64,000 nucleotides of DNA from Cycas panzhihuaensis (Eukaryota > Plantae > Cycadophyta). The stretch is from NCBI GenBank assembly GCA_023213395.1, contig CM041465.1, forward strand, positions 44,647,741-44,711,740. The letters run 5' to 3'. The translations under genes were made by a program, and so were the position numbers. Below the pieces are notes generated by a model. That model was given only the letters and a program-made list of their open reading frames with translations, did no database searches and was not told where the DNA came from. Shown piece after piece: positions 14,959 to 58,409 of this stretch; position 1 is the stretch's first letter; every line of letters starts with the position of its first letter.

Positions 14959-14960
<2 letters not shown>

Positions 14961-28925: not shown

Positions 28926-28926
<1 letters not shown>

Positions 28927-28966
<40 letters not shown>
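28927..28966. repeat. (TA)n(CA)n compound microsatellite
   Basis: Direct reading. Confidence 0.95.
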
Positions 28967-33300: not shown

Positions 33301-35551
33301 TTTTTGGCAGTCAAGCATTTGTTCATATACTTGATTCAAAAAGGTCAAAATTAGATGCAAAAAGCATAGAATGTATTATGATAGGCTACAACAAAAACTC
33401 AAAAGCCTACAAATGCATAGACCCTAAATTCGACAAGATCTATGTAAGCAGAGATGTAATTTTCAATGAAGAAGATGATTTCAATGAACCTACACAAGTC
33501 AGAGTAATTGAAGAAAGTGGAAAAGAGATTGAGCAAGAAGCTACAAAGGAGACTAAGCAGGAAGTTGCATCAGAAATCACATCAGAAGAAGGGATTTCCT
33601 TCCCATCATCATCAGATCCAACGATACATGAAGCAGAATCTGTCATAGAACAACCAGCAGAGGAGTCTAACAGTAAGGAAGGCTCATAAAAACAAGAGAA
33701 GTTACCTAAATGGTACATTAAGACAATTGAGGAAGGAAAAGGCAATGTAATGGAACACAAAACAAGAAGTCAAAGAATAAAAGCTCTACTAAGCAGAATC
33801 AAACCTCAAACTTTTCAAGAAGCCAAGGATCAACAAATGTGGAAGGTTGCCATGGACAGTGAAATGGACTCAATTAAAAGAAATCAGACATGGGAATTGG
33901 TAGAATTGCCTACCAACAAATCTGCTGTCAACTGTAAATGGGTCTTCAAAGCCAAAGAAGGAATGGATGGTAAAATAGAAAAGTATAAAGCAAGATTAGC
34001 CGCAAAAGGATACACACAAACAGCCGGGGTAGACTTTGATGAAACGTTCTCTCCTGTGGCTAAAATGAACACTGTAAGGACAGTAATTGCACTAGCTGCG
34101 ACACAAAATTGGAAGGTCTTCCAATTAGATGTAAAGAGCGCTTTCTTGAATGGAGAACTGGAGGAAGAAGTCGACATGAAACAACTTGAAGGATATATTA
34201 AAGAAGGGCAAGAAAATCTAGTTTGTAGATTAAAAAAGGCATTATATGGTCTGAAGCAGGCTCCTCAAGCCTGGTACGCCAAATTAGATCACTTTCTAGA
34301 AGAGAACAACTTTAAACGATGTAATTCAGACCCCAGTCTATACATAAGGAAAAGGGATGGTAAAGTTACAATAATTGTGATCTATGTTGATGATATGCTT
34401 CTCACTGGGAATGATGAAGAAGGCATTAAAGACATAAAAGAACAACTCCAGCAAAAGTTTGAAATGACAGACTTGGGTCCTTTGAAGTATTACCTGGGAC
34501 TAGAGATAGATCAACAACATAGTTATATAACTTTGTCCTAGAGCAATTACATTAAAAATTTACTTGCTAGGTTTCAGATGGAAAATTGCAACCCTTGTGT
34601 CACACCCATAGAAACAAATTGTGAACTAATGGCAGATGATATGGAGGAGGCTGCAGACATCACTATATACAGACAAATGATTGGAAGCCTAATTTATCTA
34701 ACAGCTACGAGGCTTGACATATCTCACTCAGTGGGACTATTATCCAGATATATGCAGAATCCAAAATTAAGACACTGGAAGGCTGCAAAGAGAATACTGA
34801 GATATCTAAAGGGAACAGTAGACTTAAAACTAGTATATCCAAAAGGAGGACCAACTAAATTGTCAGGATATTGCGACTCCGACTGGGCTGGAGACAAGGA
34901 ACAAAGGAAGTCCACTAGTGGATACTGTTTCTTCCTGGGCTCTTCAGCAATTTCATGGTGCAGTAAAAAACAAGCTACGACTGCACTGTCTTCCACAGAA
35001 GCAGAATATAAGGCCGCCACAACAGCAACTTACGAAGCTATTTGGTTGAGGCAACTTCTGATCGACCTGGAACAACAACAAAATAAAGCAACTTCCCTAA
35101 AATGTGACAATCAGAGCGCCATCAAGCTGACCAAAAATCCAGTTCTTCATGCAAGGACAAAGCACATAGAAGTTCATCATCATTTCATAAGAGAAAAAGT
35201 ACATAACAAGGAAATTGACCTGGAATATTGTCCGTCATCAGAACAAATTGCAGATCTTCTGACAAAACCTCTTGTGAAAGAAAGACTTCAATATCTAAGA
35301 ATAAAATAAATCTGTTAGAGATAAAACATTAAGAGCGGGTGTTGAAATGTAATGTTTTATCTAGGTAAAGAGGGGTCATGTTGAGATCACCCTCAAATGT
35401 AACTCTAATATGAGATTGTGACACTTGGCTGTCCTATATTGATTAGTTACATCTCAATGTGTAACGGTCATCTTTATGATGTATATTTAAGGAGCATGAA
35501 CCTCAATGAAACACATGCCATTCCTACCTCATTTCAATTGAGTATTCATCA
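30340..35551 (+). mobile_element. Ty1/copia element E, full length (5212 bp)
   Basis: 212-bp LTRs 30340-30551 and 35340-35551 (about 9 differences by eye). TSD CTCAT. PBS TGGTATTAGAGC at 30552, PPT before 35340. Confidence 0.96.
31239..35309 (+). pseudogene. copia gag-pol of E, few stops
   Basis: MASAVISLLEPEKLTDSNYHVWKIK...; two CCHC-type knuckles; WYIDLGASRHM; rve core; IYVDDML; RNase H CDNQSAI...TKHIEVHHHFIRE. Confidence 0.95.
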
Positions 35552-38500: not shown

Positions 38501-40072
38501 GGCGATCCCTTCCTTTTATAAACTTGCTAGATTTTATGTTTTGGTAGTGTGGGTCGACTAACTTCTGCTTCATCTACAACATCTTTTAGGGCTATCCTAG
38601 TTACCGCAAAATGATCTATCCCCACTTTTGGATTTCTATAATTTGATTCTTCTTTGCTCTATCTTCCCTTCGACTTGTTTCTATTTTATAATTTTACTAA
38701 ATTGGTAGGTGGCCTTGGCACAATCATGGTTAGATTACTCGCTTTGACATTATTTGGGCAATTTTCAAAATCATTATTTCTAGGACTGCACTTCCTACGT
38801 ATATGTGTGTCATCATTACTTGCTTCCTTATAAGGGAAATTCGACCTCGAAAGTTCGAACTCCAAGTCGAAGATGCAATGTCCTATTGACTTTTTCTTTT
38901 TTAGTGGATCTAGTGCCACCTAGGTGGAGTACGCCAAATAGGTTTTGCCACCTCTACCTTAGCCTCTTCCTTGAGTGTTATTTCATTGAGCATTACTATA
39001 ATAATCTCGAGTGTTGTGTGTGAGGGCTTCACAGATAGTGCACCACTTCTCCTCCTCCTCCTTCCCTTTTTGTGTCTTTGCTTGCTTATTTCTAGCTTTT
39101 GACTCTTCTTTTGGTTGCATGGGATTTTTCTATGCTTGTGCTAAATCAATCTTTAATTTATTTGTAATGCTTCCATTTCTAGGTTTTCTTCTAACTTTTC
39201 GATTGTGTGACAAATATTTTCAACCCTAAACTCCTTGATTTCTTCTCATAGCATTCTCAAATGCCATCTTGATTAGTCCCTTCTTCACTGTGTATTTGTT
39301 TCTCAAATTTTAATGCCATCTTTTTTGCCTTTGTCCAGGTCTCAATTAGATATCATTACAACCCATCCTGTAACTTTGTATCAAACCCATCTATAAAATA
39401 TGCCTCCGTTAAGTAATCTAACACTTTTTATCTATTTGTGATGTTTTTGGCAAGAATCACCATCTTGCTTTCATAATGTAACACTAACTCCCTTGGCCTT
39501 TGGTAGATGTCTTTAAGGGCTTGTATAATAGCTTGGTTACTACAAAGTTTTCGGAATCTCTACTAAAGCTCTTTCATCACGTGCTCCTAAGTTAACTTTG
39601 TTAAATTATTTAATAGAGATCATCCGATATTAAGAATATTGAAACAAGCATCATGAACATAATGGAAATATCATTAACTTATAATCAGAATGTCTAAATC
39701 ATAATGACTCCACAACAATGACTTCACAATAATCTCCATCTTGAATCAATGTACTTTACCTCACTCACTCATTTATAGACCACAAGTGAGAATATGTAGG
39801 ATGAGGGGTGTGGTACATGTGGGACCATCAACCTCTAACACAACTAATGACATAACACCTATTAATTGACCAATAACCTATAGACCACCTACTTGTATAA
39901 ATGTGCATTATAATAATATTATAATATTTGACTCTCTAAAGTCTAACACCTCCCCTTAATACACATTTGGGGATTTCTTGAATTTACAATGTCTTGGTCT
40001 TAGAATTGTCTTGAAAATAATGTCTTCAATTTGTCCTTTAGCTTCATTCCTGTAATGATGTCCTTGAAGTGG

Positions 40073-41143
40073 TTATTGAGAGTAATGGTTCTTGAACTTG
40101 ACATTCTTCATCTTGGTGTGCAACACTGAATCCTTCATCATACAAAATGTATGGTAAATCATAGTTGGTCCAACTTGAGTTTGGTGTAGATCTTGTAAGT
40201 AATCCTGTAGGTAACCATTAAAAACATCTTGAAATTCAAAGTTCATATCAAGCATGTCTTTGATCATTGTTTCAATTACAACCTGTTTGTTTTCATTGAC
40301 GTATGAATAATTAGCATCAATTGAGCTAACATCAATATTTGAAGATAAGACATCAAAAGAAGAATCAACATCACTTGAAACATCTGAGAAATGAGTATTA
40401 ACATCCTGTATAAATTCTTCTTCTTGACTAGCATATCCAATAATAATTCCTTTAGCTTTTGGAGCAGAGTCTTTGTAAACTTGCAAACAAATTTTCTCAA
40501 TGTTTGAACAATTCGAATTTGAACCAATACTCAAACCATTGTTTGAACTTGAATCAATGGATAGAGATGAATCACCAGACTTATCTTCAATAGGACAATC
40601 ATATTTAACAACACATTCGATTGCAGTCTCTTCATATTCATTACTTGTTTCATCAATATTCATAATTTCTTTATCAAGATCTTGACATACCTTTTCACTA
40701 GTATCAACATTACTTTCATCATCCTTTTTACTTGCATTATTAATAATTTTGTTTGCTTTTTCAGCAATCTCTTGTACCTCTTTAGGAGTCTTTTAATACA
40801 CATCCTTCAAAAGGTTCCAAGTTTCTTTAGTAGTACCAACATTATGAATTACAGGGATGAGAAGTTGGTAGGAAGAAGGAGGCTCATCTTTATTTAATGC
40901 AGTAAGAATAACATCAATTATTGTTCTATTCTTCTTAAAATTTTCTTCTCCTTCTACATCAATTAAGGCATCTTATCCATCAATGATAATTTTTCATAAC
41001 CTTTTGTACACAAATATACCTTCCATTTTGATTGCCCAATATCGATAATTTGTTCCTATGTACTTAGGTAAGGGAAAAGGAAGGTCTATTAATTAGTACT
41101 CATTCTTTCCAGGTACAAAAATGATGATGTCACTCAACTCCAT
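40073..41143 (-). pseudogene. Truncated copia Gag N-terminus fused in frame to an acidic low-complexity tail (element P1)
   Basis: MELSDIIIFVPGKNEY*LIDLPFPLPKYIGTNYRYWAIKMEGIFVYKRLWKIIIDG, with the NY..W..KM....LW copia Gag motif. Same frame as ORF 40073-40663. Confidence 0.8.
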
Positions 41144-42168
41144 GATTGTAAGAATGAATCGATCAAGAGTGCATCACACAAGATTCATGCATCCACTTCA
41201 AATTGAAATAACTTGATGAAATTAGTAGCAAAATAAAGTCACATTTTAGACTGTAGTACTTTAAATGAGGATTTCAACAGTTCAAACAATTTGGAAATCG
41301 GATGCCTAGTTGAGGAGATATTGCGAAAATTGTAACATGACCTCCTTATGAAAATAACCAATTAAGGTCGTTAAGAGTTTAGTCGCTTTAACAAATTAGC
41401 AACAAGTCATATTGAGACTACATGGGACCAAAGGCCTTTACTGCTGGGGGGGCTAGCAGACTCCAAATTACATTCCAATATGATTGAATCCAAATTTGAC
41501 TTTACAAAAATAATTAAATCCTCCTTATTCAATTTGACGTCCACGGATTTGAAATAGATTTTAGTCTGCCTTAGTTTAATTCATATTTTTGAAAAAATAT
41601 AATCCCTAACCAAAATATGATCTCTGCATTTGCGGTGGCAGGCAATTTCATCTTCATCTATGTCTTGTGAGCGATGATGTATTATGACAATGGAGTGTGC
41701 TCAGGGTCTTTAGCTATTCATGGATCTCACAGACTTCAACAGATCTTCAGCTCATCACAGGTAGGGCACGAAGGAGCAGAGCGGATGATCTTCTCGGTGG
41801 AGGCAACATCACAACAACAAGATAAACTCAGGAGGTAGGATGGCTTAGAGCAGTCGTAAACACGAGTGCAAATGAGTGTAAAGAGGACGTCACACTGAGG
41901 AGCTTCCTGTGGATTATCGAGCGAATAGATTTCACACAATTAGGCCGTTCAACCAACATTGCATGTAGAACGATACCTAGGTCTTTGGAGGTGGAATGTC
42001 ATGGTCAACACACATAGAGCAGCTTTTAACACTTCAACGGAGAAGTGAACGACAGGGGTTTTTATGAACATGGAAGTCACTCAGTCTCATGGAGTAGGGA
42101 CGAAGTAGACAGGAAACTCTTCACACAATCGCATAGTCAATTACCGAGGAAGTTGGTAGCAAGGGCAG

Positions 42169-42411
42169 TCATAGGTAGTACCGTCGATCCACTACTCCAT
42201 TTGTCAACTGTTCTTTTTCATCCGAAGTCATGTTGCAGTCTTCAGTGATATTGTCTTTGGCTTTGCCCCACAAAACGAAATAGAGACCTGCGAAGCTTAG
42301 TAGCACTCCCAACACGCTTCCAAGATAAAGGGTTTCATGTAGAAATATGCAGGATAAAATTGCGGAGGACACAGTACACACTGGGTTGAATATTGCCACG
42401 AACATTGGTCC
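42169..42411 (-). pseudogene. Captured fragment of a WAT1-related / UMAMIT (nodulin MtN21, EamA) transporter, C-terminal helices
   Basis: GPMFVAIFNPVCTVSSAILSCIFLHETLYLGSVLGVLLSFAGLYFVLWGKAKD matches the family's GPVFV..F.P...E..YLGS..G......GLY.VLWGK signature. Confidence 0.9.
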
Positions 42412-45400
42412 CTACAAGTGACAATCCGCAACAGACGACTCCTTTGTACAGAATGGTTCCACTCCGATCCATGTTCCACGTGGGCACATATCTTCAAGTT
42501 CGTTTTTTTTACGGCAAGCAAGGTTCTAGGCGTATCAACCTTCTATGCAGGGTTTGTGGACAACTGCTTCTCTTTATCTTCGTTTATGTCTTCAACGGGG
42601 TGTTTCTCCTCTACAATCATTTCCATGGCTGGCAGCTTTAATCCATCTCACCTCAGCTTAGCCATAATCCTTTGGATGACAATCTCCTTTGTGCAGGATT
42701 TTCCTTTAGCTATGGCTACCTTCTTCTGTGGGCAGCCCTTCATACATGTAGGAGCCCCTTCAATAGACAACACTAATCAACCGTTTTTTCATGAATTGGA
42801 TTCCCTTTCCACATAGACATCACTTTCCTATGCAAGATTTGCAAATTTCCACGTAGGAACCTTCACTCGGCTTATGCAGAGTTTCCATGATAGCCATAGT
42901 CGTGTCCTTCCATGCACTCTTCTATCATGTATTTCATGCAACCCTTTTCCATGGACTATCCTTCTTGGCCGAAGACCTATGAGTGTCTTATATCTATCAC
43001 TGCTCAACTGCATTCATTCTAGCTAGGGTTTTACAAATGGTTGTGGCTAACTTCTCTATGCATGCAGGGTTTATTCATGGCATAATTTCTCCATAAAGAC
43101 AATTTTACATAGAAATTGGTAATTGACTTTAATTTCACCAATTAAATCCTCAATATTTTTCAACACAAACCCTAACAAGTATTTACATGTACAAAACCAT
43201 CACTTTCACCATACAAACATAATTCAATGACCAGCAAATTTAGATTCATTCATATGTCACCACTTTTCAGCTTCACAAATTCACACCAACACCAACCAAT
43301 TTCTTTACAGTGTAAACCTTACCATAAAGTAAGTGAATAGTATTACCTGGTAATAATTCTATCTTGTATCAATCATAGTCACTGGCTTGGCACAACTTGC
43401 AACAACAACAGCCTTAGGGTTTTACCTTCTACAAGCAGATGCTCGACCTAGCAATCAACTCTACGGAGCCACCTTCACACACATCAATAAATTGGTGAAC
43501 CTGCAAAACGTTGAGCTTGACAACAACCTGCTCTGTTACCATGTTAAATTAGTTAATAGAGATCATCCAATATTAAGAATATTGAAACAAGCATCATGAA
43601 CATAATGGAAATATCAGTAACTCATAATCAAAATGTCAACATCATAATGACTCCACAACAATGACTTCACAATAATTGCCATCTTGACTCAATGCACTTT
43701 ATCTCACTCACTTATTTATACACCACAAGTGAGAATATGTAGGATGAGGTGTGGTACATGTGGGACCATCAACCTCTAATACAACTAATGACATAAAACC
43801 TATTAATTGACTAATAACCTATAGACCACCTACTTGCACAAATGTGCATTACAATAATATTATAATATTTGACTCTCTAAAGTCTAACAAACTTGTTAGC
43901 ACTGAGATTTTTTTACCATACAAATGGTGCTCTTTGTAATGTGCACGAAAAATGGCATTTGATATCCTCCTCATTCTTAATACGTTGTATCGATATCATA
44001 TTGTTAAAGAGATACATGTATTCTTTTGTGTCTATTGCACCATTGAATATTAAATGGTTTAGGGTTCTATCATTTTGGTAGATAACTGGTGCCATGGGGC
44101 TTGCTATTTTGGGTGGCATACTTATACCTAAGGTGTTTAAAATTGGTGTATTAACTGTGGCTATTGTTGACATACTTGAGCCTAGTCTTCGCTATGGTTT
44201 TGTACAAGACTTAAACAAGGGATTTTTTCACGGCATTTTCAAGTACATCACCACATCTACTCATGGCATTTGAACAATTAACGATGTGGCTATTAGAAAT
44301 GTATTGTCTCGTAGCTCTAGAGGGGTGTCAAAGAACTTCCTTGTGAAGTAATTTTCTTGGTGTGCCTCAAGACCTTCCTCTACCTTCTTTTCGTTGTCCC
44401 TCGTGCTCTATGAACTTCTTGTTTTTTCCCACTTATGGTTTCTTCTTTCCATTGTTGGTTCCTTGTTGAGGATTGATAGATGGGCCTCTTTGCAAATTTT
44501 GAGTTGCTTCTAACATCAGTGGGTTAAGTTCACTATTAGCTGTTAGGGGTGTCCACAATTCGTTGTCTTCTAATGTTTTGGTATACTTAGTCTTGCTTGA
44601 TGATGATGTGCCTTCTATCTTTAATCTTCAAAGTTTACACTCCTTGGCCCATGTATTATCATTTCTCAACTTGATTTGGCTATTCCCTTGTTCAAAGTCT
44701 TCTTTGGTGGCATTGGAAGGATCCCTAACTATTGAGGGTTTAGTTAGAACCCATCAAAATGGTAGTAGCTAGGGTCCTTTCTATTTTGATTGGAATATTC
44801 TAATTCAAAAAAGAATGTTCTTTTTTAAATTGAAAATGAGAAACTATAAAATATAGTATAGAAGGGCTTTTTAAAGTTTGTTTTGATGAAAAAAGTGAAC
44901 AAGGAGAAAAATCACATAGCCAAGGAACTACATCTGTCACTTAAAAATTTGCTTATAACCCATCGAGTAATTTCTTTTCCTTTCCATTGGGTTCTTGTGT
45001 GAAATAGAATAATTGAATCCATGACTTTTGATGAAGAACTTTATTATTTTAGCCTCAACATTTGGGCAATGATATTTACCATTAATATTTAATATTTGAT
45101 GTTTGCATCGAGATTTATGCCGAAAAGCATTTGATCCTTGATGTTGCCATTAACCTAGGTCGCCACTATTCTTTTGCTTGCATGTTGATTTGGGCATTGG
45201 CATATTTCACTCCTATTTGCTTTTACCATAGACTGCCACCATGCTTGAATGAGGAAGGTCTCAGGTATCACATTCTAAGGAAGATGAGGCCATTATTGAC
45301 CCCTAGCATGTGATTATTCAAGAGTTAAGGGATCACTAGATTGCCATGATGCAAAATCAAACAATTATGATGTAAAATCATACTATTATAATGTAGAACA

Positions 45401-45889
45401 TGATGGACATATTCAGCAATATGATGGCCTAATAGCTTTAGGCTTCATGGTTCGTAGCATCCTCTCTGAACACATCATTCAAGATTGATAATAAGATCTC
45501 TATTGAGAAATTTGATGGCTTCATTAATGTGAAAGCTCTAGATAGTTGAATATGAAATCTAGAGGCCTCTTTTAAAACACAACAATTGACAAAACAAGAA
45601 CAAATTGTATTGGCAAAGATACATATGGGAAGCCAAACTCTCACTTGTAGGCAATTGTATAGGTTGATTATTGCAAAACAACTGCTTGTCACTGCATGGA
45701 GTCAAATTGCAATGGTAAGAAGAGAATGATTTTACCCTCTCGATTACAAGAATGAATTAATCCAAACATGGATCTAGCTACACATGCTACTAGGGTAAAC
45801 GATACAACAATATATCGATACTTTTCATAAGTTGTCAATCATGCTAGAGATCATTGATTTTGATCAATATATGCAAAGGAAAATCAAGC

Positions 45890-46050
45890 TTAAGAGTGCA
45901 AATTAGAGTGCAATCTAAAGTACGGCCAGGGAACAGGATTGCAACCTAGAGTACAACCGAGGACCAGGATTGCAACCTAGAGTACAACTAAGGACCAGGA
46001 TTGTAACCCAAAAGTATAACCAAGGACTAAGATTGCAACTAAAAGCATAA
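45890..46050 (+). repeat. ~30-bp tandem repeat in LTR of H
   Basis: About 4-5 degenerate copies of GGACCAGGATTGCAACCTAGAGTACAACCGA. Confidence 0.8.
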
Positions 46051-47379
46051 TTGAGACCCCAACCAACTAATGGATTGTAATTGTAATTAGTTTGTATGGA
46101 CTAACAAGATGGTTAGTTAAGTTTTGTTGTAATAGAACGTAGTTATTATCATTATATAAAATGTATTCTTGTTGAACGAGGATATCATCTAGGTTTAGGC
46201 TTTCTAATCTTCTTCTTCTTCTTTGTAACAACAAGCAACCAACTTCTCTTTTTGTAGCAGATTCTTCATTTTGTATTGCCTTTGGGTTTGCATCTGGTGA
46301 AGAGAGGACTAGATGTAGTTCTCTCTTTTATGTATAAAGGAGCAATTGGTTTGCATCCCAGTTGACATATATATTCTTAAGTGCTTTGTGTTCTGATATA
46401 TGCTTTCTTGAATAATGCACATAGTTAGATAGAGGAACACACATTGGTTTCGTTGCCTCACTTGAACTTGAGAGGAAGATGCTAGTAGAAGATGGACAAA
46501 AGTAATTAGAAAAGACAGTGTCTTTTCCATGCCACCAAGAAATGATTCTGAAAGAAAGAAAAATATGCACCAAGAGCGTAGCGATCACTGGGTGAGCGAG
46601 AGGATACAAGGAGGCACATGTAGACCGAAATTTTTTGTCACAACAAGAAGATAAGTGAAGAGCAGACCACCTGCGGAATCAGTAGTAGAAAAGAAATCAA
46701 TTCCAAAAGTTAAAGAGAAAGATAATAAGTTTACGGAGCTAGAAGTCTTAGAGCAAGAAACCCTAGTTCAAGAAGTGGGAACTTAGATGGGGATAGGAAC
46801 AGAAATCCTATAAAAGAATCAACGGTGTGCATTGGAGCAAGGCCCTGCAAATGAAGTTAGTCTATAATCAACATCTTCAAGCATAGAGATGTCACAAAAT
46901 TAAACCATATCAGGAAGCGAGAGTATTTCCACAATCATAGAGAATTATAGTACTTCTAGTGGAAGTGGGGTCATCCCATTGTTGAGGAGCAATCTCTTTT
47001 CACTTAGCACAAAAATCCTTTGTATGTCGAAATGGGGGAAAGATTCATTGGATCAACTTTGTTTGACCCATTCATCCCACAAGGAGATGGAAGCCCTTGT
47101 TAGGTAGGAAGCACACTCAGGAATTCTCTAATGGGAGGAAGTAGTAATCAACCACTAACAGGGAATGCCATGAATTCTGAAGGACACAGTCCATTGCAGT
47201 TAGGAGGAATGACAACATATCTATTGATGGGGGGAGGTGGTAGTTGACCACCAATAGGCAGTGCAGGGATCCCTGGAATTGCTGCAAGAGGAGGCAATGT
47301 ACCATCGCTAGGAGGTTTAACAACCAATCCAATTCCAACAAGTAGAGTACAACCCATAGCTTTCTATGTAATCATATAG

Positions 47380-50300
47380 AATGATGTTGCTTTTGCAAAC
47401 TTGCAATTTGATGGATTAGGAGACAGAGGGGACCATTTGGCATTGTTCTCGAACATGCTAAAAATAAAAATTATCCATGATGCTAATGAGATAAAGGTAA
47501 AGTTCTTTTCAATCATGCGAGGAGTTGCTATAATGTGGTATCAATATGTTTCCACATGAAATCCAACATGGGAGCAATTACAAGTTTATCTTTTGGACTG
47601 ATTCCAGAAGTTACGAGATCCCAAGGCAATCTTTTAGGCATTAGAAGAGATTCATCAACTTCTAGGGGAATCGATAAGTGATTTTGATGGATGCATGAGA
47701 ATCATTATGAATAAGATGGATTCAACAACTCCAATCAATCTTATGTTAGCTTTGAAATATTTTGTCCAAGGACCGATTCCCAGTTGAGGGAAAAGGTAAC
47801 ATTGCATCCAATGAATAGTTATGAGCAAGTGCGGGAGTCGGTGCTAAAATTTAAGAATTAGATGAAGACAACATACCTGCAACTAGTAATGTAGATGGGG
47901 TTGAATTTCCAGTTTGGACTTGCTTTTCAACAAGCACCACAAGGTGAAATCAATTTGTAGCAACCCACATCAAACTTCTAGCAAGGAGTAAATTTTCAAA
48001 TGGGGCCCAATCCTCAACAAGGATTGCAGTTGTCACAAATGGGATTTAATCCCTAACATACTTTACAAATGGGATTAAACTCAGAGTTAGAAGTGCTGAA
48101 AAGAGAAGTTGAAGCTTTGAAACAACCACCACCTATTTTAATACCAATGGGAATGCAACAAAACTAAGAGATTGAGCGTTTGCGCATAGAATTGGCACAC
48201 CTGCGCTTAGAGAAACCTCGGGAGAATGTATGGTGTTCCCCACCTTGCAATTAACAAGGCCAAATTCAAAACGAGCATCCAAAAGCACCAATGGGAGTAA
48301 TCATAGCACATGGGAGTGTTATTTTCGACTATCACTTAGAGGACATGGACATGGACCCAAGATTAGAGATTCCTTCTATAAAAAAAAGGATCAAAGTTGA
48401 TTAAAGCAATACAAAGGGAAGACAAAACACATTTAATGTCATTTATGCCAGTGATGGGGGCATTATTGATCGGAGTGTCCATTGGAGAAAAGAGGAGGAG
48501 AATATGTTTGTGAAAAATGTGGACCATTTGATCATGAATGGAGAAATTGTTCAAAAAATTGTAATGCTCAAGTACAAACTTCTAATTTAGTGACAAAAAA
48601 TCCAAATAAAAAAAAGTTTTCGTACTTGCAAACACGAAGTGAGAAAGTCTTAACAAATCTTGTAGCAGGGAATTTTCCAGAACCTATTGTTGAAAAAAAG
48701 AGATACTAGGAGGTGGTTAGAGCTTTGCAAGATGCAATGAACTAGGTACAACATGAAGAGATACAACAAGCTAACTGATTCAAAGGACAAGCATACAAAA
48801 TGAGTCCAACTTTTTAAGAAGTTCAACAACAAGGAGAGACCATGAAAGAAGGATTGAATCCTTGGCAAAGATTACAACTGGTAAGGAACTTGCTCATAGA
48901 ATTGGGAGTTACCATCCTAATTGCTATAGTTTTTAAGTGGTGGAAGGCTAGGTATTTTCATCAAATTGTTCTAGACCAGATTGAAAAACCAATGTTGAGT
49001 GATTTGAAGACAGATGTCGTGGATCCTCAAGTTCCAATGGCCATTCTTGGAACAACCATCTGCAAAACTATTGTAGATGGTGGATCGAGAGTAAATGTTC
49101 TGCCAAAGTCCTCATGGATATCATTGGGAAGGCTAGAAGTGGTTAGCCCAGACTATTCCATCAGGTTAGTGAATCAATTGCAGGTCAGACCAATGGGGAT
49201 GTTGATGAATGTGCTAGTCACTGTGGCAGGAATAATTGTTTTATTGGACTTCGCTATGGTTCAAATGCAAAATCACAAGATCTATCCAACATTACTTGGG
49301 AGAGTCTGGTTGCTAGCCACCAAAGCAATCCAGGATTGGGGGAGGTTCACATTTACTCTCTCAGTAAAAGGACAAGTAGTGACCTTGCCTGTGTTTTGAT
49401 GAATCCAATATTGAGAGGATTAAGGACAAAGATAAGGGCTCTTCACCCACGGTGGAAACTAGATCAATTGTAAATCCCTGTTAAGAAAAGGCATATTAAG
49501 TCCAAGCTACACCATGATCAATGCTTAGTGATCTATCTTCAACATATATGTTAAATTGGTTGCAGAATGCCTGGGAGGAAATCAAACCAATAAATAGCTA
49601 TCATTTGGAACTATGTCTAGATTCATCTTTAGAGGAGGATGAGATAGATTGTGCCATAAATCAAGAAGAACAATAGTTAGAAATCTACCTTGCAAAGTTA
49701 TTCAAAGACTGATCAAGTGGGAACAAGTTGAAAGCAAGGTTAGCAAACCCAAAAATAGTATAGCAATTACAAATCATTCAAGGTAATCACAAACTATTCA
49801 TTGAAGTTCTTGAAAAATTGTCACAATTTTGGGGGCAAAAGAATGTTGCAACAAACCATTTAAAACAATGTGTAAAATGTTTGAAGAATAATGAATGGCA
49901 AGAAAAATTTTGGGTGTACCTCTTTCCGTTGTCTTCGATTGGGTAGCCATTTGCTTTGTATAGTGCACATTATACTCAATTGGAAAATTGGACTTTGATG
50001 GAAAATAGACTTAAGATTAGATTCTAGCATGAAGATCATGAACTCCCAAAGTTTTGTAATGGTAATAACCTAGGGCAATGCATTTTGAATTGTAAAAATG
50101 TTTGGGAAGGGAAAAACATCCCACAACAGGAATGGACTCATCATTGGGCCATTGCCTTTGTGGATGTTAGTTATAGTTTCTATCACCATTGTGAGAGATT
50201 ATAGATAGTAGATTGGAATCAATTAACAAAAGAATTCAGTAATACTTTTTTTATCATAGTCCAAATTCTCGAGCACAAACAATTCTTTCTGCATTAAGAA

Positions 50301-53165
50301 GAAAGGCAACAACTCAAACAATTGGATGTTTCCACATAGAGTCCATTGAAGAAGAGGGTTAGAGACCGGATTTAAAATCTTTTTTAGACAAAGATAGCAA
50401 GGAGAATTTGCAGAGTTTCCCCCACCACATATTCTATTATAGAATATGGGGATAGGAAGATAAACTAGACACTAGCTTGTGAATTACAAACAGATGGGAA
50501 GGTGGTCCAAGGAAATGAATTAAAATTGCAGAAAATTAACATTGTAATAGAAGTCTAACCCAAGTATATGACCATGGGTGATTATTGGGATGAAGAGACT
50601 GTGAATCAAACAACAATGCTTTTCATTGAATACAAAGATGTGTTTGCATGGTCCTACAAGGATCTTAAGGGAATCCCACTAGAATTGGGAGAACACAAGA
50701 TTGAGCTGATCAATGAGGCAAAGCGAGTTACACAATGCCCCTATTGAATGAATCCAAAATATAAAGATAGGGTCAAGGTAGAACTTGATAGGTTGTTGAA
50801 AGCCTAATACATCTTCGAGGTCGAGAACAACGAATGGGTGAACCCAGCCATAGAAGTTCCCAAGAAAAACAAGAAGTTATGAGTTTGTGTGGATTATAAA
50901 GCCTTGAACAAGGCAACAAAGTGGGATCCATTCCCTATTCCATTAACCAAAGATGTTTTGGAAAAGGTAGCAGTCGATGGAGTCTTTTCATTCATTAACA
51001 GATTAAGTGGATACAATCAAGTGAGAATTGCTCTCGAAGATTAATTGAAGACAACCTTTGTCACGGAATGGGGCACATATGCCTACCGTGTCTTGTCTTT
51101 TGGCTTGATGAACACACCAACTACCTTCCAAAGGGTAATTTTGAATATTTCTCGAGTAGCCTTAAGAAAAATGATTGAAGTTTGCTTGGATGACTATACC
51201 CTATATACTCTTTTAGATGATCATTTGAGCAATTTGAGATTAATGTTGGAGATCTGTAGGAAAAGCAATTTGTGTTTGAATCCAAACAAATGTACTTTTA
51301 TCGTACCCTTTGGTTCATTGTTAGAACCTGTGGTCACCAAACAGGGATTGCTGATAGATCCAACAAAAGTTGCAGCCATTTGGATTTTTTCGATACCAAA
51401 GATTGTAAAGAATCTTGAAAGTTTCCTGGGTATGATTGGTTAGTATAAAAAATTTACTAATGACTATGCTCAAATTGCAAATCCTTTGGAGTCTTTGCTG
51501 AAGAAAAAAACATGACAATGGACATTGAAGCATCATTTGACTTTTGATATGTTAAAAAAGAAGATCGCTCAATCACCAATATTGAGGTTCCCATATTGAG
51601 AAAAACCATTCCACGTCTATGTGGATGCATCATTGCATGCCATCAAATGTGTGTTAACCTAGCCAGGAGATCACAATGTTGATCTTCTAGTGTATTTTGC
51701 AAGCCAAAAACTCACAAAGGATGAGCAAAATTATTGTATTACGGGAAGAGAAGGGTTGGGGATGGTGTATGCCCTAGAAATTTAGGCATTATTTGTTTAC
51801 AAATTTGTGCATCTTTTTTGTATACCATCAAACCTTACAATATTTGATTAACAAACCAATATTGTAGGGTCAGATTAATTGATGGTTGATGTTGTTTCAG
51901 GAGTTCACCTTCAAAATTATCATGAAAAAAACGGAGAAATATATCACTCCAGATCAGTTATCTTGTGCATTGGAAGTAATGACAAGAATACTAGATGACT
52001 TTCTAGATAACAAACTATTTGCGATTGAGGTAGTACCAACCTGCTATGAAGGGATTGCAGAATATCTCACAACAGTTAAAACACCTATAAGGCTAGAACA
52101 AGCAGAACATTGAACCTTAGTAAGAAAAGCTTTTCCCTTTCAGTTGGTTCATGGTATGCTTTACAAATTAGGACCTGACGAAGTCTTGCATCGTTGTGTC
52201 CTAGAACATGAAGTAGAATGAATACTAAGGGAAGCTCATGAAGGGCCTGCAACAAAACACGAGCGTACAATTATTGAATGGAAAATCCTATTGGCAGGAT
52301 TATGGTGGCCTGCCTTGTTTGAGGATGCTGATAAATGGATTAAATTGTGTGATGTTTGTCAAAGAGTAGGGAGACCCTTGAAGCAGCACTTTATGCCCCT
52401 TCAGCCGATATTAGCCCAAGCTCCATTTGAAATATGGGGATTGGATTTTATGGATTTTAGCGGTCCAATCAGCCTACCAACATGGCACACTAATGTAAGA
52501 TATATATTAGTGGCTACAGATTTCATGAAAAAGTGGATAGAGGCCAAACCAATAAGGTGTTGTGATGCACAGAGCACGACCCATTTTTTTTACGAAGTCA
52601 TATTTGTTTGTTTTGATTGTTCATTAGAGATTGTCTCTAACCAAGGGAGCAATTTTTTAAATCATATAATCAAACATTTAACTTTCGAATTTTTGACTCA
52701 GCATAATAAATCTTTGCCGTATTATCCAAGGGCAAATGAGCAAGTGGAAAGCACCAACAAGATCTTGAAGATTGCCTTGACCAAAATCTGTAATACTAAT
52801 AATACAGATTAGGTTGAAGGACTACATTCGGTCCTATGGATAGATTGAACAACACAAAATGACCCCATAAATAGACACCATTTTAGTTGGTTTATGGGAT
52901 AGAGGCCATGGTTCCTTTGGAGTTCCAAGCGAAGAGCATAAGAGTGACAAATCAATTGTAAATGGAGGAATGAGAATCACGAGACCAACGACTTTTGGAT
53001 TTAATGAAGTTAGATGAACAACGAGCTAAAGCTTTGTGGGAGATAAAGTCAGAGAAAGCCTGGAGCAAAGCATGGCCTGATCGACATTTTAAGCAACCAT
53101 AGTACCAGGTAGATGATTTAGTACTCTTGTACGACAATAAATTTTGAATGAAACCAAGCAAGATG
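47380..53165 (+). pseudogene. gag-PR-RT-RH-INT of element H, degenerate
   Basis: Gag CA-like FDG...HLALF at ~47410, zinc knuckles at 48230-48560, and ORFs 48842-49399, 51045-51443 and 52291-52812. Confidence 0.85.
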
Positions 53166-53953
53166 TGTTAGATTTTAACATGGAAAGCATTCAACTCTAA
53201 CATCAATCAACAATATCAATGAACAAAGCATAACTTGTATTAACTCAATATAAGCATATTACATCAGAACATCAATGCACCATAGACTCAACATGAGTCT
53301 CCATGATGACTTTATTACATACTCTACCTCAACCACCTTTATATACAACATAGGTGGGAGAACATACAAGAGATGGGATGTATGTGGGACAAATGCCTCT
53401 AACCTAGCCAATGATATTTTATCAACTAACTAAGCAATGACCTTTTAACTTCCTACATAACATTATTATAATGTATGACCCTTAGACTCTAATACTTAGG
53501 ACTATGACTCTATTGACTCTAAGACACACTTTACATAGAACACATATATTTTAAACATTATATTCTAACACCTCCCCTTAATGTTTAATGTTGAGACTAT
53601 AGGAAAACTAAGGACAACATGACACCTAGTGCTAAGGACTGACACAAACTACACATAAGACTTGACTTAAAGAGTTGTTTGACTTTCCAATACCCGAGTC
53701 TTGGAACTTTTTTGAAGATGATGTCATAAGCTTTGTCTTCAACTGAAATGCTGCAAAATCTATATGTTGTGTCTGTTATGTCACCTCCTGTTTCCTGTTT
53801 GATGACTCTTCCTGTGTATTATAACTATAGGTATGGTCTTCTTTGAATTTTGTTTCCTGGATCAAGTATGATGACATATGATCTCAGTTCCATGAGGAGA
53901 ATGGACTCCTTGTTGTTTGTCTCCAAGTATGCTAGGATGATCAACTTCTCGAG

Positions 53954-55150
53954 TCAATGAACACTTCCTTGAAAGGAAAGGAGGAACAATGATTCCTTTC
54001 CTAACTCCACCTGTGCAGGTACATGTCCAGAACCAACAAGATACTTTGTTCTCTCTATATCATCCAAGAATTTTTTTGTGCCAAATGCGATGAGAATTTC
54101 CATTATGACTACATGCACATGTGTCCCGGTTATGGTTACATAAAGATAGAACTTCACTTTGACATAATTGAATTTCATAGTTAGGTGGCCTACCAAAACC
54201 ATACAATGATCTTGGTGGACAAGATTTTGATCAAATGATATTCTAGCTATGTTCTTTCTTCCTTTGAATGAATCTTCTAGAGTTTTTGCAGGGTATGCTA
54301 TCACAATTTGGATTCTTTCAAAGATGAAAATAGAAAATGCAACTAAGTTGAATGTAATCATAGAGAGTCTCATGCATGTGCAAATAATCGTATACCCTAA
54401 AATCATTTGAACCCTGGCAACAAATCTATCAACACAAATTAAGGTAATGTTGCCTATACTTTCTACCAAGGTACTTGTGTCTCCATGGTGTACCACCTGT
54501 AAAAGTTGATCACTTTCGGATCTTTTAACCTCCATTCCAAATGTAGAGTTTCCTGTCAATTTGATGAGTCTCAAAGCATTTGGTGAAATCATGTCTTTAG
54601 ATTACAAATAGTGTTCAACTGTCTTATTTTCAGAAATGGGTTCATGCAATTCTTTATCTCTTTTATGAGTGACATATGAATTTATATGAGAACTGGTCTT
54701 ACCTGAATCAATTTGTTTTTCCCTTTTCACTTTTCTCTTCGGCTTCTTTTTCTAGTTCTTTGTCTTCTTGATAGCCTTCTGCACTTCTTCAAGACCTTTT
54801 TCATACACTTCCCTCAATAAGTTTCATGCCTCTTTAGCTGAGTCAGTGTTCTGAAGTGTATGGATAAGAAAATGGTATGAAGGAGGGAGGTTATCTTTGT
54901 CGAAAGCTGCAAGCATCACATCAGTAGCTACTCTGTTCTTTCTCCTAAAACTTTCCTCCCCTTCTTCATTAATCGCTGAAGTGCCATCAAGAACAATTTT
55001 CCATAACCCTTTAGCTCTAAATATGCATTCCATTTTAATTGCCTAAACATGGAAATTTATTCCCATATATTTAGGTAAAGGGAAAGGAAGATCTATCAAC
55101 CAGTATTCTTTTTTTTCTGATACAAGGACAGTAATATTTTTCAACTCCAT
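53954..55150 (-). pseudogene. Truncated copia Gag N-terminus fused in frame to a basic linker and an unidentified ~210-aa domain (element P2)
   Basis: MELKNITVLVSEKKEYWLIDLPFPLPKYMGINFHV*AIKMECIFRAKGLWKIVLDG is homologous to the P1 ORF. One frame runs through ORFs 54824-55033 and 53954-54592 with four internal stops. Confidence 0.78.
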
Positions 55151-55872
55151 GATGTGAGAGAGAGTTGATTACAAACACACTATTCATAATTAACTTCAAC
55201 CTAAAATAAATCCGTTAAATTAGTAAAAGAATGTTTTAAATCACATGGCCAGGTTAAAGCCACTTAACAAGGTTTGCTTCCTTTCCTGCAACTCAAATAT
55301 CTCTACCAAATAACTTATCCTTCTTGCCCTACTGTGAATGAGTTGACGCTGATAACTTTAATCCAAAGTTTACCCTTACTTGCCCATTAATTTTTTTACA
55401 TGCAGAAATGTAATCACTTTATATCACCATCGAGACTTTACTTTATCACCAACAAAAGAATCATATTAATCTTGAAGGAATACTCATAAAAGTCTTTTGA
55501 TGGAATAACACCAAAGGGCAATAATCTTTAAAATGAGAAGTTATAAAAGGTTAAATTGATATATCAAATATCAATACTCTAACATACGAATCGTGCCTCA
55601 ATATCTTAATTGTGATTAAAGGGGCGAGATTACCTTGATAATTTCGTTGCGGAACCAACGATTCGAATGTAATTTAATTAAATTCCAAATTTGAGTAAAT
55701 ACAAAGGGGCGTTCATGCCAGAACCCTAAGTGAGGTGGCGGCAAGAATTTTGATTGGTTTGCAGGTCGAATTAATCTTCAGGATTGATAGATTGCAAGAT
55801 GCTCTTCCTTGATATCAATCTTGTCGAATATATGTAGATCTTCAGTTCTCAATTCGTGGTCTGCGGCTCTGA

Positions 55873-56082
55873 CTTGTTCATCCCTTCGATGGCATCTCTC
55901 ATGGACTGCTCATCACTGTAGGTTACAAATCCAAATCCATGGGATCTACCATTCTCTCGATCAAATACGATCTTGGATTCTAGAACTTCTCCAAAAGCCC
56001 TGAAAGCCTGTTCCAGACTTCTGTTGTCGGTGGCCCATGCAAGCCTGCCAATGAAACATCAATACTCAACTTCGACTGAAGC
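55873..56082 (-). pseudogene. GRP7: Intron-less fragment of a glycine-rich RNA-binding protein (GRP7/GRP8 class RRM)
   Basis: Manual translation: ASVEVEY*CFIGRLAWATDNRSLEQAFRAFGEVLESKIVFDRENGRSHGFGFVTYSDEQSMRDAIEGMNK. Contains RNP2 and RNP1 (RSHGFGFV). Not in the ORF track. Confidence 0.93.
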
Positions 56083-56097
56083 AGGATAGAAACAAAG

Positions 56098-56515
56098 ATG
56101 AGAATGGCCAATGCTATGGCAATGACAGTGGCTCCCGCTCTCTCAATTCTTACAATAGGAGGAGGAACAACCAATACAACCCTGCCCAAGATTTGTTCAA
56201 TGCCAACCACACTAAACCCCAAGTTTGCAGGGCTTAACCTCAGATGTGCCCGTGTTGGAGGAGTGGAAATACCCAACGGTAAAACAATAGAATATTCATT
56301 TCAATACATTCATGGAGGAGGAAGTACCACAACTTGTCAGATATTATTTGATTTGGGTATGGAGAATAAGGTTACTCGTGGCTTGGCTGAGGAGGAACTG
56401 ACCAAAATTCGAGATGAGGTGTCAAGGTATATGATTGAAGGAGATTTGCGACGGTTTAACAACCTTGCCATCTAAAGACTGATTGAAATTCAATGCTACA
56501 GAGGAAAGACACCTA
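56098..56515 (+). pseudogene. RPS13: Fragment of nuclear-encoded plastid 30S ribosomal protein S13 (transit peptide plus most of the mature protein), uninterrupted
   Basis: ...LRCARVGGVEIPNGKTIEYSFQYIHG...[38 protein letters not shown]. Premature stop at 56473-56475, truncated before the usual GLP.RGQRT motif. Confidence 0.95.
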
Positions 56516-58409
56516 GATAGAGTAATTTGGGCAGTATCTCATTGAAGACCATTGTCTCTCCATATGTAATCTGCTCTTTCGAAGGCTCCACAGACTTTCA
56601 TGCAATCTTTCTACTGCTGCTTCTTTAGAGATTTCTGCTGTTGAGGCTTGTTTGATGACAAGAAATTGCTCGACACTTTATTCTTCATTCATGCTTTCTT
56701 TTGTCATTTCAGCCTAAATTTCCTGCAAACAAGTGCTTTATACATGCAACTAGACTCCTTTTTTTTTGCAATAGGTCTTCTTACAACACTTATAGAAACA
56801 AGGGGAGTAGCCAATGAAAGGCTTCTTTCTAAAAATTTTCAACAAACCCAGGAGGACATAATTACCCAATATAAGTTTTGTTTTGAATCGTCACTTAGCA
56901 CACCTTACACCATCGATGGTCATGGGACTTCACCTTTACTACTCCAATTTCAATCCAGCTACCAACTTAACGGAGCCACCTTCTTCCTCACCGAAAACCT
57001 TGACGAATCTGCACAGCAACAATCTTACCATGCAACCTGCTCTGATAACATGTTAGATTTTAACATGGAAAGTATTCAACTCCAACATCAATCAACAATA
57101 TCAATGAACAAAGCATAACTTGTATTAACTCAACATAAGCAAATTACATCAAAACACCAATGCATGATAGACTCAACATAAGTCTCCATGATGACTTGAT
57201 TACATACTCTACCTCACTCACCTTTATATCCAACATAGGTGGGAGAACATACAAGAGATGAGATGCATGTGGGACAAATATCTCTAACCTAGCCAATGAC
57301 ATTTTACCAACTAACCAACCAATGACCTTCTAAGTTCCCACATAACATTATTATAATGTATGACCCTTAGACTGTAATACTTAGGACTATAACTCTATTG
57401 ACTCTAAGACACACTTTACATGGAACACATATATATTAAACATTATATTCTAACAAGATGAAGTTGCGTTGGATAGGGTTGTACAAGGTATAGTATATTT
57501 GGTAGAATGGAGTTGTCCAACTTAGATAATTAGATGGTAAGATATTGACCAAGGTGGTCAATGGAAGTTGGTTGAAACCATATCATCATTTCAAAAAAAG
57601 GATGTAAACGAAGGAGATAGGAATCTTGAATCACAATGTGCTTTCTAATGGTGAGTTATGATTGCAATCTTGAGTATGACCTTTAGCAAGATTGTAATTT
57701 GATTGTGAATAGGTAATAACTAGAAGACCGTTAAAAGATAGGGAGGTGGTGGACAATTGGTGATAAGACAACAATTGGTGAAACGACTTTTCAACAGACA
57801 AAATAATAATGATTAGACGAGCATATTTCTACCACCTTTGCACACGAAGATTCATTGTGAGGTCGTCTCCTTGGTATGAACAAGCTAAGTTAAAGATTGT
57901 AATGCAGAAATTGGGTGTAGGAACAACATTGGAGCAAATGGCAATGAAAGAAGAACTCCCCCAAATTAACATCGTTCTGTGAGTTAGATGATGTCCATAT
58001 TTGGATAGAATGAGGTGTAATGAAGGAAGAAGATCCACAGAAGCAAGCAATAGTTTCATCAACTCTTTCATAGTACATCTCCATTGTTGTTCTTCTAATT
58101 TATATGAAATTCTTGGTACTTGTAACAACGATGGTAGCATTACAATAATCGATTCTAAATTTTTTTGTAGAGGTAGTCTCATAGTTAATAGTTTTACCAA
58201 TAGAAGGTAAGGATATTCCACGTGATAAGCAAATTCCTTATGAGCAAGCAACAAAGGAATTGGGCATAGATGAAGCTAAGGTGTCCAAGTTACGAATAAA
58301 GTTTATAGGAATCAATTTTGAATAGATAAGGTGGATAGCTCAGTTCCTATTCATGAAAGTTATTTCAAGCCAAAAAATTTTGTATGTTCCGACTAATCTT
58401 CATTCGATG

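Follow-up and report, generated by a model that had tools for sequence, protein, structure and literature searches.

Host-gene fragments between leader and ORF of two related, pol-less copia-derived LTR elements in Cycas panzhihuaensis

The window, which is the whole 64-kb stretch of Cycas panzhihuaensis DNA analyzed here, contains two LTR elements on the minus strand, P1 and P2, the parts of which are listed in Table 1. The LTRs of P1 are 93.7% identical (350-nt alignment), and the element is flanked by a perfect target site duplication (TSD) of 5 bp (39594-39598 and 43890-43894, AACTT on the plus strand). The LTRs of P2 share 93.1% identity (405 nt aligned), and its TSD is also perfect and 5 bp long (53161-53165 and 57456-57460, AGATG on the plus strand). 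An earlier note on this DNA had described an LTR pair and a TSD at the ends of each element, which was confirmed, and the iMet-type PBS, the leader motif, and the PPT that it described as common to both were all located where it had placed them. The classical copia PBS is TGGTATCAGAGC, from which the PBS of P1 and that of P2 differ by one mismatch each. The PBS core is identical in an autonomous copia of the window at 30552.

Table 1. Features of the elements P1 and P2, given in element order.
Feature	Position	Strand	Remarks
P1 element	39599-43889	-	4291 bp, paired LTRs and perfect TSD
P1 5' LTR	43542-43889	-	348 bp, TG..CA, TATA-like box
P1 PBS, iMet type	43525-43541	-	abuts 5' LTR; TGGTAACAGAGC at 43541-43530
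P1 leader, conserved with P2	43340-43524	-	contains 14-nt motif at 43463-43476
P1 insert without P2 counterpart	41245-43339	-	~2.1 kb; UMAMIT piece is the sole identified part
WAT1/UMAMIT (EamA) C-terminal coding fragment	42172-42411	-	sense to P1, then own stop codon
P1 decayed ORF	39961-41143	-	394 codons, 5 in-frame stops, no frameshift
P1 PPT	39949-39958	-	TAAGGGGAGG; adjoins 3' LTR
P1 3' LTR	39599-39948	-	TG..CA, pair of 43542-43889
P2 element	53166-57455	-	4290 bp, paired LTRs and perfect TSD
P2 5' LTR	57051-57455	-	405 bp, TG..CA
P2 PBS, iMet type	57034-57050	-	abuts 5' LTR; TGTTATCAGAGC at 57050-57039
P2 leader, conserved with P1	56858-57033	-	contains motif at 56970-56983; strongly repetitive in public runs
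P2 low-copy cargo patchwork	55658-56857	-	borders only to ~170 bp, from read bins
Plastid RPS13 fragment	56080-56508	+	antisense to P2; 24 nt of 5' UTR and codons 1-134 of 169
GRP7-type RRM fragment	55852-56082	-	sense to P2; RRM_1 match and parent-gene contigs
P2 AT-rich spacer before ORF	55151-55657	-	intermediate repetitiveness
P2 decayed ORF	53583-55150	-	522 codons, 9 in-frame stops, no frameshift
P2 PPT	53571-53580	-	TAAGGGGAGG; adjoins 3' LTR
P2 3' LTR	53166-53570	-	TG..CA, pair of 57051-57455

Homology between P1 and P2 is limited to the LTR core, the PBS and leader, the start and the tail of the ORF, and the PPT, with ~68-71% identity over the LTR core, the ~200-nt leader, and the gag-like start. 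The proposal of a single family therefore holds as far as the two are related in these parts, but at 68-71% identity they belong to two related families and not to one. The leader motif occurs at exactly two sites in the window, those listed in Table 1, with a chance expectation of 0.08, and two matches were reached in none of 100 shuffles. In both elements an insert occupies the same slot, between the conserved leader and a point that lies ~100 nt before the ORF begins. The two inserts are unrelated in sequence, which agrees with the different cargo described for this position, and the P2 spacer aligns with P1 over its final ~100 nt only. The near-identical lengths of the elements are probably a coincidence, as no basis for them was detectable. 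In the two autonomous copias of the window, the leaders of which measure ~690 and ~70 nt, no host fragments were detectable.

The ORF of P1 starts with a gag-like N-terminus (~115 aa), continues with an acidic and serine-rich unrecognized middle part, and ends in a relic of the C-terminal part of RNase H. Its frame shows five stops in 394 codons compared to 20 and 56 in the other frames, and the alignment of its tail with the copia RNase H end scores 54, compared to 27.2 +/- 5.4 for shuffles (1/500 shuffles). The P2 ORF also has a gag-like N-terminus, followed by a hydrophobic unrecognized middle and a tail similar to that of P1, with nine stops in 522 codons compared to 41 and 38 in the other frames; the relative P0121 has 289 open codons at 74% identity. 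Among the Pfam profiles, the gag pieces of the window match Retrotran_gag_2 at E 0.078 only, which is below the cut-off. The intact relatives P0124 and P0125 match DUF4219 at E 7e-4 and 2e-4, and Retrotran_gag_2 is matched in intact relatives at E 0.0066 (positions 1-76 of 172). These values are likewise below the Pfam cut-offs, and the two matches occur in the order known from copia Gag (DUF4219 plus Retrotran_gag_2/UBN2).

When the INT, RT, and RH of the window's own copias were used as tblastn queries, no match better than E 0.05 was obtained in P1 and P2, in line with the reported absence of PR, INT, and RT, and neither element contains a CCHC knuckle. What had been read as a truncated Gag is indeed gag-like, but it forms only the N-terminus of a decayed ORF of 394 or 522 codons that reaches the PPT. 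Due to the RNase H relic in P1, both elements appear to be internal-deletion derivatives of a copia, and since this relic is the only similarity to pol, they are non-autonomous derivatives and not full copia members. A search of 1.84 billion representative proteins turned up no autonomous partner, and no other family members emerged when public collections of metagenomes and viruses were scanned.

The cargo of P1 matches the EamA profile with 23.6 bits, which is under the Pfam cut-off. This sub-threshold score is backed by a match to WAT1-related proteins with 57-58% identity (E 7.6e-10 and 1e-15), so that the WAT1/UMAMIT fragment previously recognized here is confirmed. Immediately 5' of it lies a run of eight adenines (42503-42510). 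The remaining pieces of the insert have neither a Pfam nor an Atlas match, and of the GC-richer cargo block formerly assigned to P1 just ~0.25 kb, the UMAMIT piece, can be identified.

The patchwork of P2 consists, in element order, of a block ending in a run of nine adenines (56759-56767), an unknown block, the RPS13 piece, the RRM piece, and a further unknown block; its identified portion amounts to ~0.65 kb. The GRP7-type RRM and the plastid RPS13 proposed for this cargo were both verified, the former by the RRM_1 profile with 65 bits (55852-56058, minus strand) and the latter by the Ribosomal_S13 profile with 35.5 bits (56080-56472, plus strand) as well as by protein matches with 74% identity to Ginkgo Gb_24491 and 70% to Picea. 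The RPS13 piece follows the protein collinearly for 135 codons (429 nt including the UTR) without interruption, apart from one in-frame stop, and is likely derived from an mRNA. The RRM piece begins one codon past the ATG of its parent and also has one in-frame stop. Its similarity to the parent ends right after an IEGMN motif (~55870), and the contig depth drops at positions below 55832. As an exon may end here, this piece could also have been taken from pre-mRNA or genomic DNA. The two pieces are joined head-to-head with 0-3 nt shared at the joint, both begin at most 25 nt from their start codons, and contigs of the parent genes depart from P2 exactly at 56080/56082 and at 56508. With a stop in every piece, the cargo of both elements is pseudogenized and has no evident function.

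The spread of P2 was analyzed with contigs of three public DNA runs mapped to a 5.2-kb stretch around this element. Each mapping comprised 8,332-9,876 contigs, a depth which does not equal copy number. They are densest on the LTRs, the ORF, and the leader, and the bins of the cargo (55658-56875) lie far below those of the backbone, i.e., a highly repeated backbone carries low-copy cargo. All that can be read from these data is that this particular cargo is absent from most P2-type copies. The junction at 56508 is crossed by ~91%-identical contigs of X3 (56420-56578 and 56462-56583) and X5 (56420-56541), which are two other species labels. As orthologous contigs of the flanks are ~98-99% identical, the junction contigs represent paralogous copies of the same P2 chimera, and because they span the junction of RPS13 with the next block, the chimera has spread after capture. 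The same switch point is thus found in several copies, as in secondary retroposition.

It is established that LTR elements capture genes, and that this extends to multi-gene chimeras and to their secondary spread (PMC5131818, PMC13317346), and partial mRNAs, several parents, and secondary retroposition are documented hallmarks of LTR-mediated retroposition (PMC5131818). In P1 and P2, host exonic sequence lies within one LTR pair and one TSD. Probably the two are internal-deletion derivatives of copia that gained host-mRNA cargo by template switching and integrated as a unit, with P2 being recopied. They would be old, would have inserted independently, and would belong to two related families of non-autonomous, Ty1/copia-derived elements, which descended from an autonomous copia and kept the LTRs, the iMet PBS, the ~200-nt leader, and the PPT as cis parts. 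One long, now decayed ORF would have been retained, composed of the first ~115 Gag residues, unrecognized sequence, and the last RNase H residues. Between leader and ORF, a patchwork of 1.2-2.1 kb with host-mRNA pieces would have been gained, in P1 from the 3' coding end of a UMAMIT mRNA and in P2 from the 5' parts of GRP7-type and plastid RPS13 mRNAs, placed head to head.

We infer that the virus-like particle was supplied in trans and that the reverse transcriptase jumped from the element's RNA or cDNA to a co-packaged host mRNA and then returned. Sense pieces would arise during minus-strand synthesis, and the antisense RPS13 piece during plus-strand synthesis, in which the leader is the first part to be entered once the PBS jump has taken place, or from the copying of host cDNA. 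The chimera would then have integrated as a unit, and at least that of P2 would have been copied again afterwards. Transduced genes are mostly in sense orientation (PMC7264820). The antisense piece is unexpected from simple minus-strand template switching, and this counts against the mechanism.

A patchwork might instead have been copied at the DNA level, from genomic loci into an integrated and still mobilizable element, while a double-strand break was being repaired or when replication switched templates. Repair filler DNA typically shows mixed orientations, short pieces, and overlaps such as the 0-3 nt at the head-to-head joint. The RRM piece terminates where an exon may end, and a large part of the insert resists identification and may represent non-coding genomic DNA. 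This origin seems unlikely to us, however, as the RPS13 piece runs through 24 nt of UTR and 405 nt of coding sequence uninterrupted, and an internal segment is duplicated in an RPS13 paralogue of Arachis, which indirectly suggests that in angiosperms exon borders lie within the captured span. Furthermore, the start of both P2 pieces within 25 nt of the start codons is expected when copying proceeds towards the 5' end of an mRNA. Less probable still are later, locus-specific insertions into the integrated elements, be they LINE-type processed retrocopies or nested fragments, to which the runs of eight and nine adenines on the sense strand of the elements might point. Such runs are statistically unremarkable in a sequence with 65% A+T and lie between blocks, not at the ends of identified genes. 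The earlier note had named TSDs or poly(A) flanking the cargo as evidence against its reading; no TSD-like repeats, i.e., no direct repeats of at least 9 nt, flank the internal A-runs, and hence there is no sign of a later LINE-type insertion. In addition, the identical slot in two elements would require a coincidence, and the junction of RPS13 with the next block is common to paralogous P2 contigs, so that dispersed copies are partly seen.

A specialized Pack-LTR lineage, in which the leader slot is a hot spot that repeatedly captures pieces of host mRNA and many cargoes are carried as in Pack-MULEs, is a serious possibility, though one that we lean somewhat against. The routine capture of host mRNAs suggested in the earlier note would correspond to this reading. 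It is consistent with two related families that share the position of the cargo but differ in its content, as well as with a P2 backbone far more repeated than the cargo and a spacer of intermediate repetitiveness, as if acquisitions were layered. However, the members compared here number two, the low depth of the cargo would be explained equally well if most copies lacked cargo, and high TE activity together with the insertion tolerance of a non-essential leader yields the same picture by no special mechanism.

TR-GAG elements, reportedly described by Chaparro and co-workers in 2015, are LTR retrotransposons with gag only. P1 and P2 share with them the LTRs, PBS, PPT, a single gag-related ORF, and the lack of pol. 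They differ in that the ORF is not a complete Gag: only the N-terminal third (~115 residues) is gag-like, the zinc knuckle is missing, the remainder is unrecognized and unrelated, and a C-terminal relic of pol is present.

The copia-like, pol-less maize element Bs1 carries parts transduced from three host genes (PMC13317346, PMC5131818). Like Bs1, the elements described here lack pol, carry a gag remnant and partial exonic pieces from more than one host gene, and, as seen for P2, have switch points that recur in a few copies, a sign of secondary retroposition. In Bs1, however, the cargo is in frame within the ORF and translated as a chimera, whereas here it lies upstream in the leader, is pseudogenized, and includes an antisense piece. 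Bs1 has 1-5 copies, whereas backbones of the P1/P2 type are highly repeated, as read data show for P2. With the LTR-mediated retrocopies of Tan et al. (2016, PMC5131818, which also cites work on yeast Ty1) they have in common element/mRNA chimeras, partial mRNAs, several parents, and later non-autonomous behavior. Those retrocopies replace part of internal ORFs, whereas here the cargo is an addition to the leader, and both families retain the ORF region and a fixed architecture. Switching depends on microsimilarity there; here microsimilarity is readable at one joint only, that of RRM and RPS13 (0-3 nt). Pack-MULEs and other Pack-TYPE TIR transposons (PMC13317346) also combine constant ends with variable patchworks of host genes in both orientations, but they are DNA transposons which take up genomic DNA with introns, whereas P1 and P2 are retroelements with at least one mRNA-like piece, so that this is an analogy and not a membership.

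For the giga-genomes of gymnosperms, exon capture by TEs on a very large scale was published in 2026, with a bias towards first exons (PMC13477047). In that work, copia and gypsy LTR elements of gymnosperm hosts carry host exon fragments, with a preference for first and second exons and with old captures, as is the case here. That study is a statistical survey (BLASTN of exons against TEs), and is not known to describe a pol-less lineage in which a slot is fixed between leader and gag. As they stand, P1 and P2 are well-preserved examples of a known process; the mechanism of capture is known, and the slot common to two elements makes them an unusual variant.

Tentatively, and with more doubt than confidence, one may go further and envisage a high-copy, pol-less copia lineage with a recombination hot spot in the leader, just past the PBS-proximal packaging region. 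There the reverse transcriptase would repeatedly incorporate 5' portions of abundant host mRNAs, in sense or antisense orientation, so that the lineage would be a counterpart of Pack-MULEs and a major source of the dispersed exon fragments, hundreds of thousands in number, that have been reported for gymnosperms. It is also conceivable, as a possibility only, that the cargo is a source of small RNA or methylation directed against the donor genes. If the slot is a recurrent capture site, it would provide a concrete vehicle and mechanism for the abundant TE-borne exon fragments in gymnosperm genomes and a test case for how template switching of the reverse transcriptase determines the orientation and the 5' bias of the fragments. 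It would also flag donor genes as possible targets of TE-directed silencing, in the present case highly expressed housekeeping genes, among them those of GRP7-type RNA-binding proteins and plastid ribosomal proteins.

The two non-autonomous LTR elements P1 and P2, which the earlier note had delimited, were confirmed on the minus strand, each with paired LTRs and perfect 5-bp target duplications. All of their LTRs start with TG and end with CA. In both elements an iMet-type PBS lies immediately 3′ of the 5′ LTR, and an identical ten-base PPT precedes the 3′ LTR. The divergence of the LTRs (K2P) amounts to 0.060 for P1 and 0.073 for P2, equivalent to a few million years if substitutions accumulate as in angiosperms. 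For conifers a slower substitution rate of 2.2e-9 per site per year is often applied; at this rate the same divergence corresponds to ~14-17 million years. The lengths of 4291 bp (P1) and 4290 bp (P2) are nearly equal despite unequal inserts, LTRs and ORFs. A cause was sought and none was found, and the one-base difference is probably a coincidence.

Positions of P1 and P2, their target duplications, the cargo pieces and the insert intervals that are unrelated between the two elements
Feature	Position	Strand	Description
P1	39599-43889	-	LTRs of 350 and 348 bp, 93.7% identical
P1 target duplication	39594-39598 and 43890-43894		AACTT (plus-strand reading)
P1 unrelated interval	43339-41245		~2.1 kb
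WAT1/UMAMIT transporter, C-terminal end (P1)	42172-42411	- (sense)	EamA, E 6.8e-5
P2	53166-57455	-	LTRs of 405 bp each, 93.1% identical
P2 target duplication	53161-53165 and 57456-57460		AGATG (plus-strand reading)
P2 unrelated interval	56857-55247		~1.6 kb
RRM piece (P2)	55852-56058	-	RRM_1, 65 bits
Ribosomal_S13 piece (P2)	56080-56472	+ (antisense to element)	35.5 bits

The entire window consists of nested retroelements, and no host gene is evident. A near-intact autonomous copia (30340-35551, plus strand) has LTRs of ~96% identity, the PBS TGGTATTAGAGC, a leader of ~690 nt and long, little-interrupted ORFs for gag (including two CCHC knuckles), INT, RT and RH. A second copia (58410-63664, genes on the minus strand) also has LTRs of ~96% identity, a leader of ~70 nt, long gag/PR-INT/RT ORFs and an additional 95-nt direct repeat at 58918-59012 and 63570-63664. 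No host fragments were detectable in the leaders of these two autonomous elements. Between P1 and P2 lies a degenerate Ty3/gypsy interior (48842-52812, plus strand) with protease-, RT- and integrase-like ORFs, and P2 is inserted directly after it. A tandem repeat with a 31-nt unit (45909-46039, 4.2 copies, 81% matches) is located between P1 and this interior. Further LTR pairs were found at 23307-30011, 7192-18464 and 8491-14715 (95, 88 and 90% identical, respectively); one is nested within another, and they contain ORFs of gypsy and copia type.

The assignment of P1 and P2 to one shared family did not hold, as their similarity is restricted to a few regions. These are an LTR core (~125 nt at 67%), the LTR end with the PBS and a ~200-nt leader, a stretch of 459 nt at 68% around the ORF start (~100 nt directly upstream of the ORF and its first ~360 nt), and a brief segment at the ORF end plus the PPT region. 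The 14-nt leader motif described as common to both elements has exactly two matches in 64 kb, against a chance expectation of 0.08. The interval from the leader to the pre-ORF region, the slot which holds the host-gene fragments (cargo), is unrelated between the elements, in agreement with the claim of differing cargo in the same position.

The WAT1/UMAMIT fragment proposed for P1 is matched by a WAT1-related protein at 57-58% identity. Extra UMAMIT residues read by eye at ~42430-42490 were rejected, having no tblastn support. For P2, the expected RRM and plastid ribosomal protein S13 (RPS13) cargo was recovered by Pfam (RRM_1, Ribosomal_S13), the latter also by tblastn. The RRM piece is very similar to the GRP7 class. 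Codons 1-134 of ~169 of S13 align to 56104-56508 (tblastn queries: plastid S13 of Ginkgo, Picea and others), with a lone one-codon gap relative to Ginkgo and one in-frame stop, and are otherwise uninterrupted. The nearest S13 proteins are those of gymnosperms (Ginkgo 74-76%, Picea ~70%, a Taxus fragment 78% identity), and several residues are common to Picea and absent from Ginkgo, which places the host among the gymnosperms outside Ginkgo. Each cargo piece holds a stop codon, and therefore all are pseudogenes. In the remaining insert sequence of both elements, 20 further stop-to-stop pieces had no match in Pfam, and the inserts had none in Rfam. Likewise, a search of the Atlas with the longest plus-strand ORF of the P1 insert gave nothing (score 0.88, low recognition).

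The borders of the P2 pieces could be placed with high-depth contigs of a fourth run, which match the two gene pieces alone and depart from the element at 56082, 56080 and 56508. Past 56082 they continue as a 5′ UTR ending in ATG and past 56508 as the S13 frame, and therefore they derive from the parent genes. Measured against these contigs, the RRM piece begins at the codon following the parent ATG and the S13 piece 24 nt upstream of its ATG. The two meet head to head, with 0-3 bases in common at the joint.

A separate observation concerns S13 in Arachis hypogaea, where three annotated uS13c-like isoforms (P0006-P0008) carry a duplicated internal S13 segment before a normal transit peptide, a layout resembling an exon duplication 5′ of the gene. 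At the end of this segment the isoforms vary in one or two residues. The duplication suggests exon borders within the captured S13 span, an indirect hint on intron loss.

The spread of P2 was assessed from assembled contigs of older runs over a 5.2-kb stretch, in which contig depth does not equal copy number. Runs with many species labels contain the stretch, and none of them is recorded as RNA. In three DNA runs, 8,332 to 9,876 contigs per run aligned at >=90% identity, concentrated on the LTRs, the ORF and the leader following the PBS. The bins covering the cargo (55658-56875) lie orders of magnitude below this backbone and a few-fold to 30-fold over the single-copy right flank, with the spacer (55136-55657) at intermediate depth. 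Flank contigs from three species labels show 98-99% identity to the window, whereas contigs running across 56508 from the S13 piece into the adjoining block reach ~91%. The latter were found in two contig sets with other species labels, X3 (56420-56578 and 56462-56583) and X5 (56420-56541). They therefore represent paralogous copies of one chimera, and the composite was therefore copied after its formation. Together, the two elements in the window and the contrast between backbone and cargo make recurrent ("routine") capture a candidate reading, which may apply here.

The backbone ORF had been described as a truncated gag. A gag-like start is indeed present, but it only opens a decayed frame of far greater length. 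Counted from the initial MEL to the PPT, this frame comprises 394 codons with 5 stops in P1 and 522 codons with 9 stops in P2, both without frameshifts, while the other two frames contain 20-56 stops across the ORF spans. It is open in relatives from public assemblies, namely P0121 (289 aa, 74% identity to the P2 middle) and P0123-P0127 (72-139 aa), of which P0127 continues P1-like and P0126 P2-like. Two intact relatives match DUF4219 (E 2e-4 and 7e-4) and one matches Retrotran_gag_2 over positions 1-76; these matches all lie below the Pfam cut-offs and are in the correct order. A zinc knuckle was looked for in the P1 and P2 frames and none was found.

The reported lack of INT and RT was supported by a comparison with the INT, RT and RH of the window's own copias, which revealed no similarity. 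In P1, the final ~50 residues of the frame align to the C terminus of copia RNase H with a score of 54 (shuffles 27.2 +/- 5.4; 1 of 500 reaches 54). The P2 tail resembles the P1 tail at a score reached by 14 of 500 shuffles; its similarity to RNase H is not significant by itself (365 of 500 shuffles reach the score). From these sequence comparisons, P1 and P2 are read as having arisen from an autonomous copia by internal deletion, with retention of its cis-acting ends and of a fused frame. When 1.84 billion representatives were searched for an autonomous partner with a profile of the gag-like region, five short relatives were recovered but nothing that convincingly represents a polyprotein; the sole long match (E 6e-4) is spread over eight low-complexity stretches. 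Patterns of the PBS-leader and the gag start had no matches in metagenome contigs (two scans) or viral contigs (one scan).

The ORF middles of P1 and P2 belong to no family recognisable with Pfam and the Atlas, and P0121 found nothing in the Atlas (best score 0.79). The P2-type middle (53583-54601, minus strand; also in P0121) is hydrophobic, strongly repeated in public runs and open for 289 codons in the 74%-identical relative. Its source may be captured sequence or decayed pol.

The picture matches LTR-mediated retroposition, in which the reverse transcriptase inside the particle leaves the element RNA for a co-packaged host mRNA and then returns. This process yields partial copies, at times of several genes, which later behave as non-autonomous elements (PMC5131818; review PMC13317346). 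Both P2 pieces are 5′ parts of their parent genes, as expected of copying toward an mRNA 5′ end; this also agrees with the reported preference of gymnosperm TE captures for first exons (PMC13477047). Transduced genes are mostly in sense orientation (PMC7264820), so the antisense S13 piece needs further explanation. The switch onto the mRNA might have occurred during plus-strand synthesis, when the leader would be entered first after the second strand transfer, or a host cDNA might have been copied.

Later insertion of independent retrocopies would predict cargo with its own target duplications. Runs of A8 and A9 on the sense strand between the blocks of both inserts may stem from poly(A) tails but are statistically ordinary, and the A-runs are not flanked by TSD-like repeats. 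Retroviral leader and dimer-linkage regions are recombination hot spots. By analogy, the slot adjoining the conserved leader is consistent with such a hot spot, and equally consistent with a leader that merely tolerates insertions.

The nearest known systems are the maize element Bs1, a pol-less LTR element carrying host-gene pieces, and the retrocopies formed through LTR elements in animals and yeast. In those the cargo replaces or joins the ORF, whereas in P1 and P2 it is located in the leader. Also unlike them, P1 and P2 represent two diverged families of high repetitiveness built on one architecture, and the cargo orientations are mixed. Exon capture by gymnosperm TEs at large scale was published in 2026 (PMC13477047), and the general phenomenon is therefore known. 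What may be new is the fixed slot within a pol-less copia lineage.
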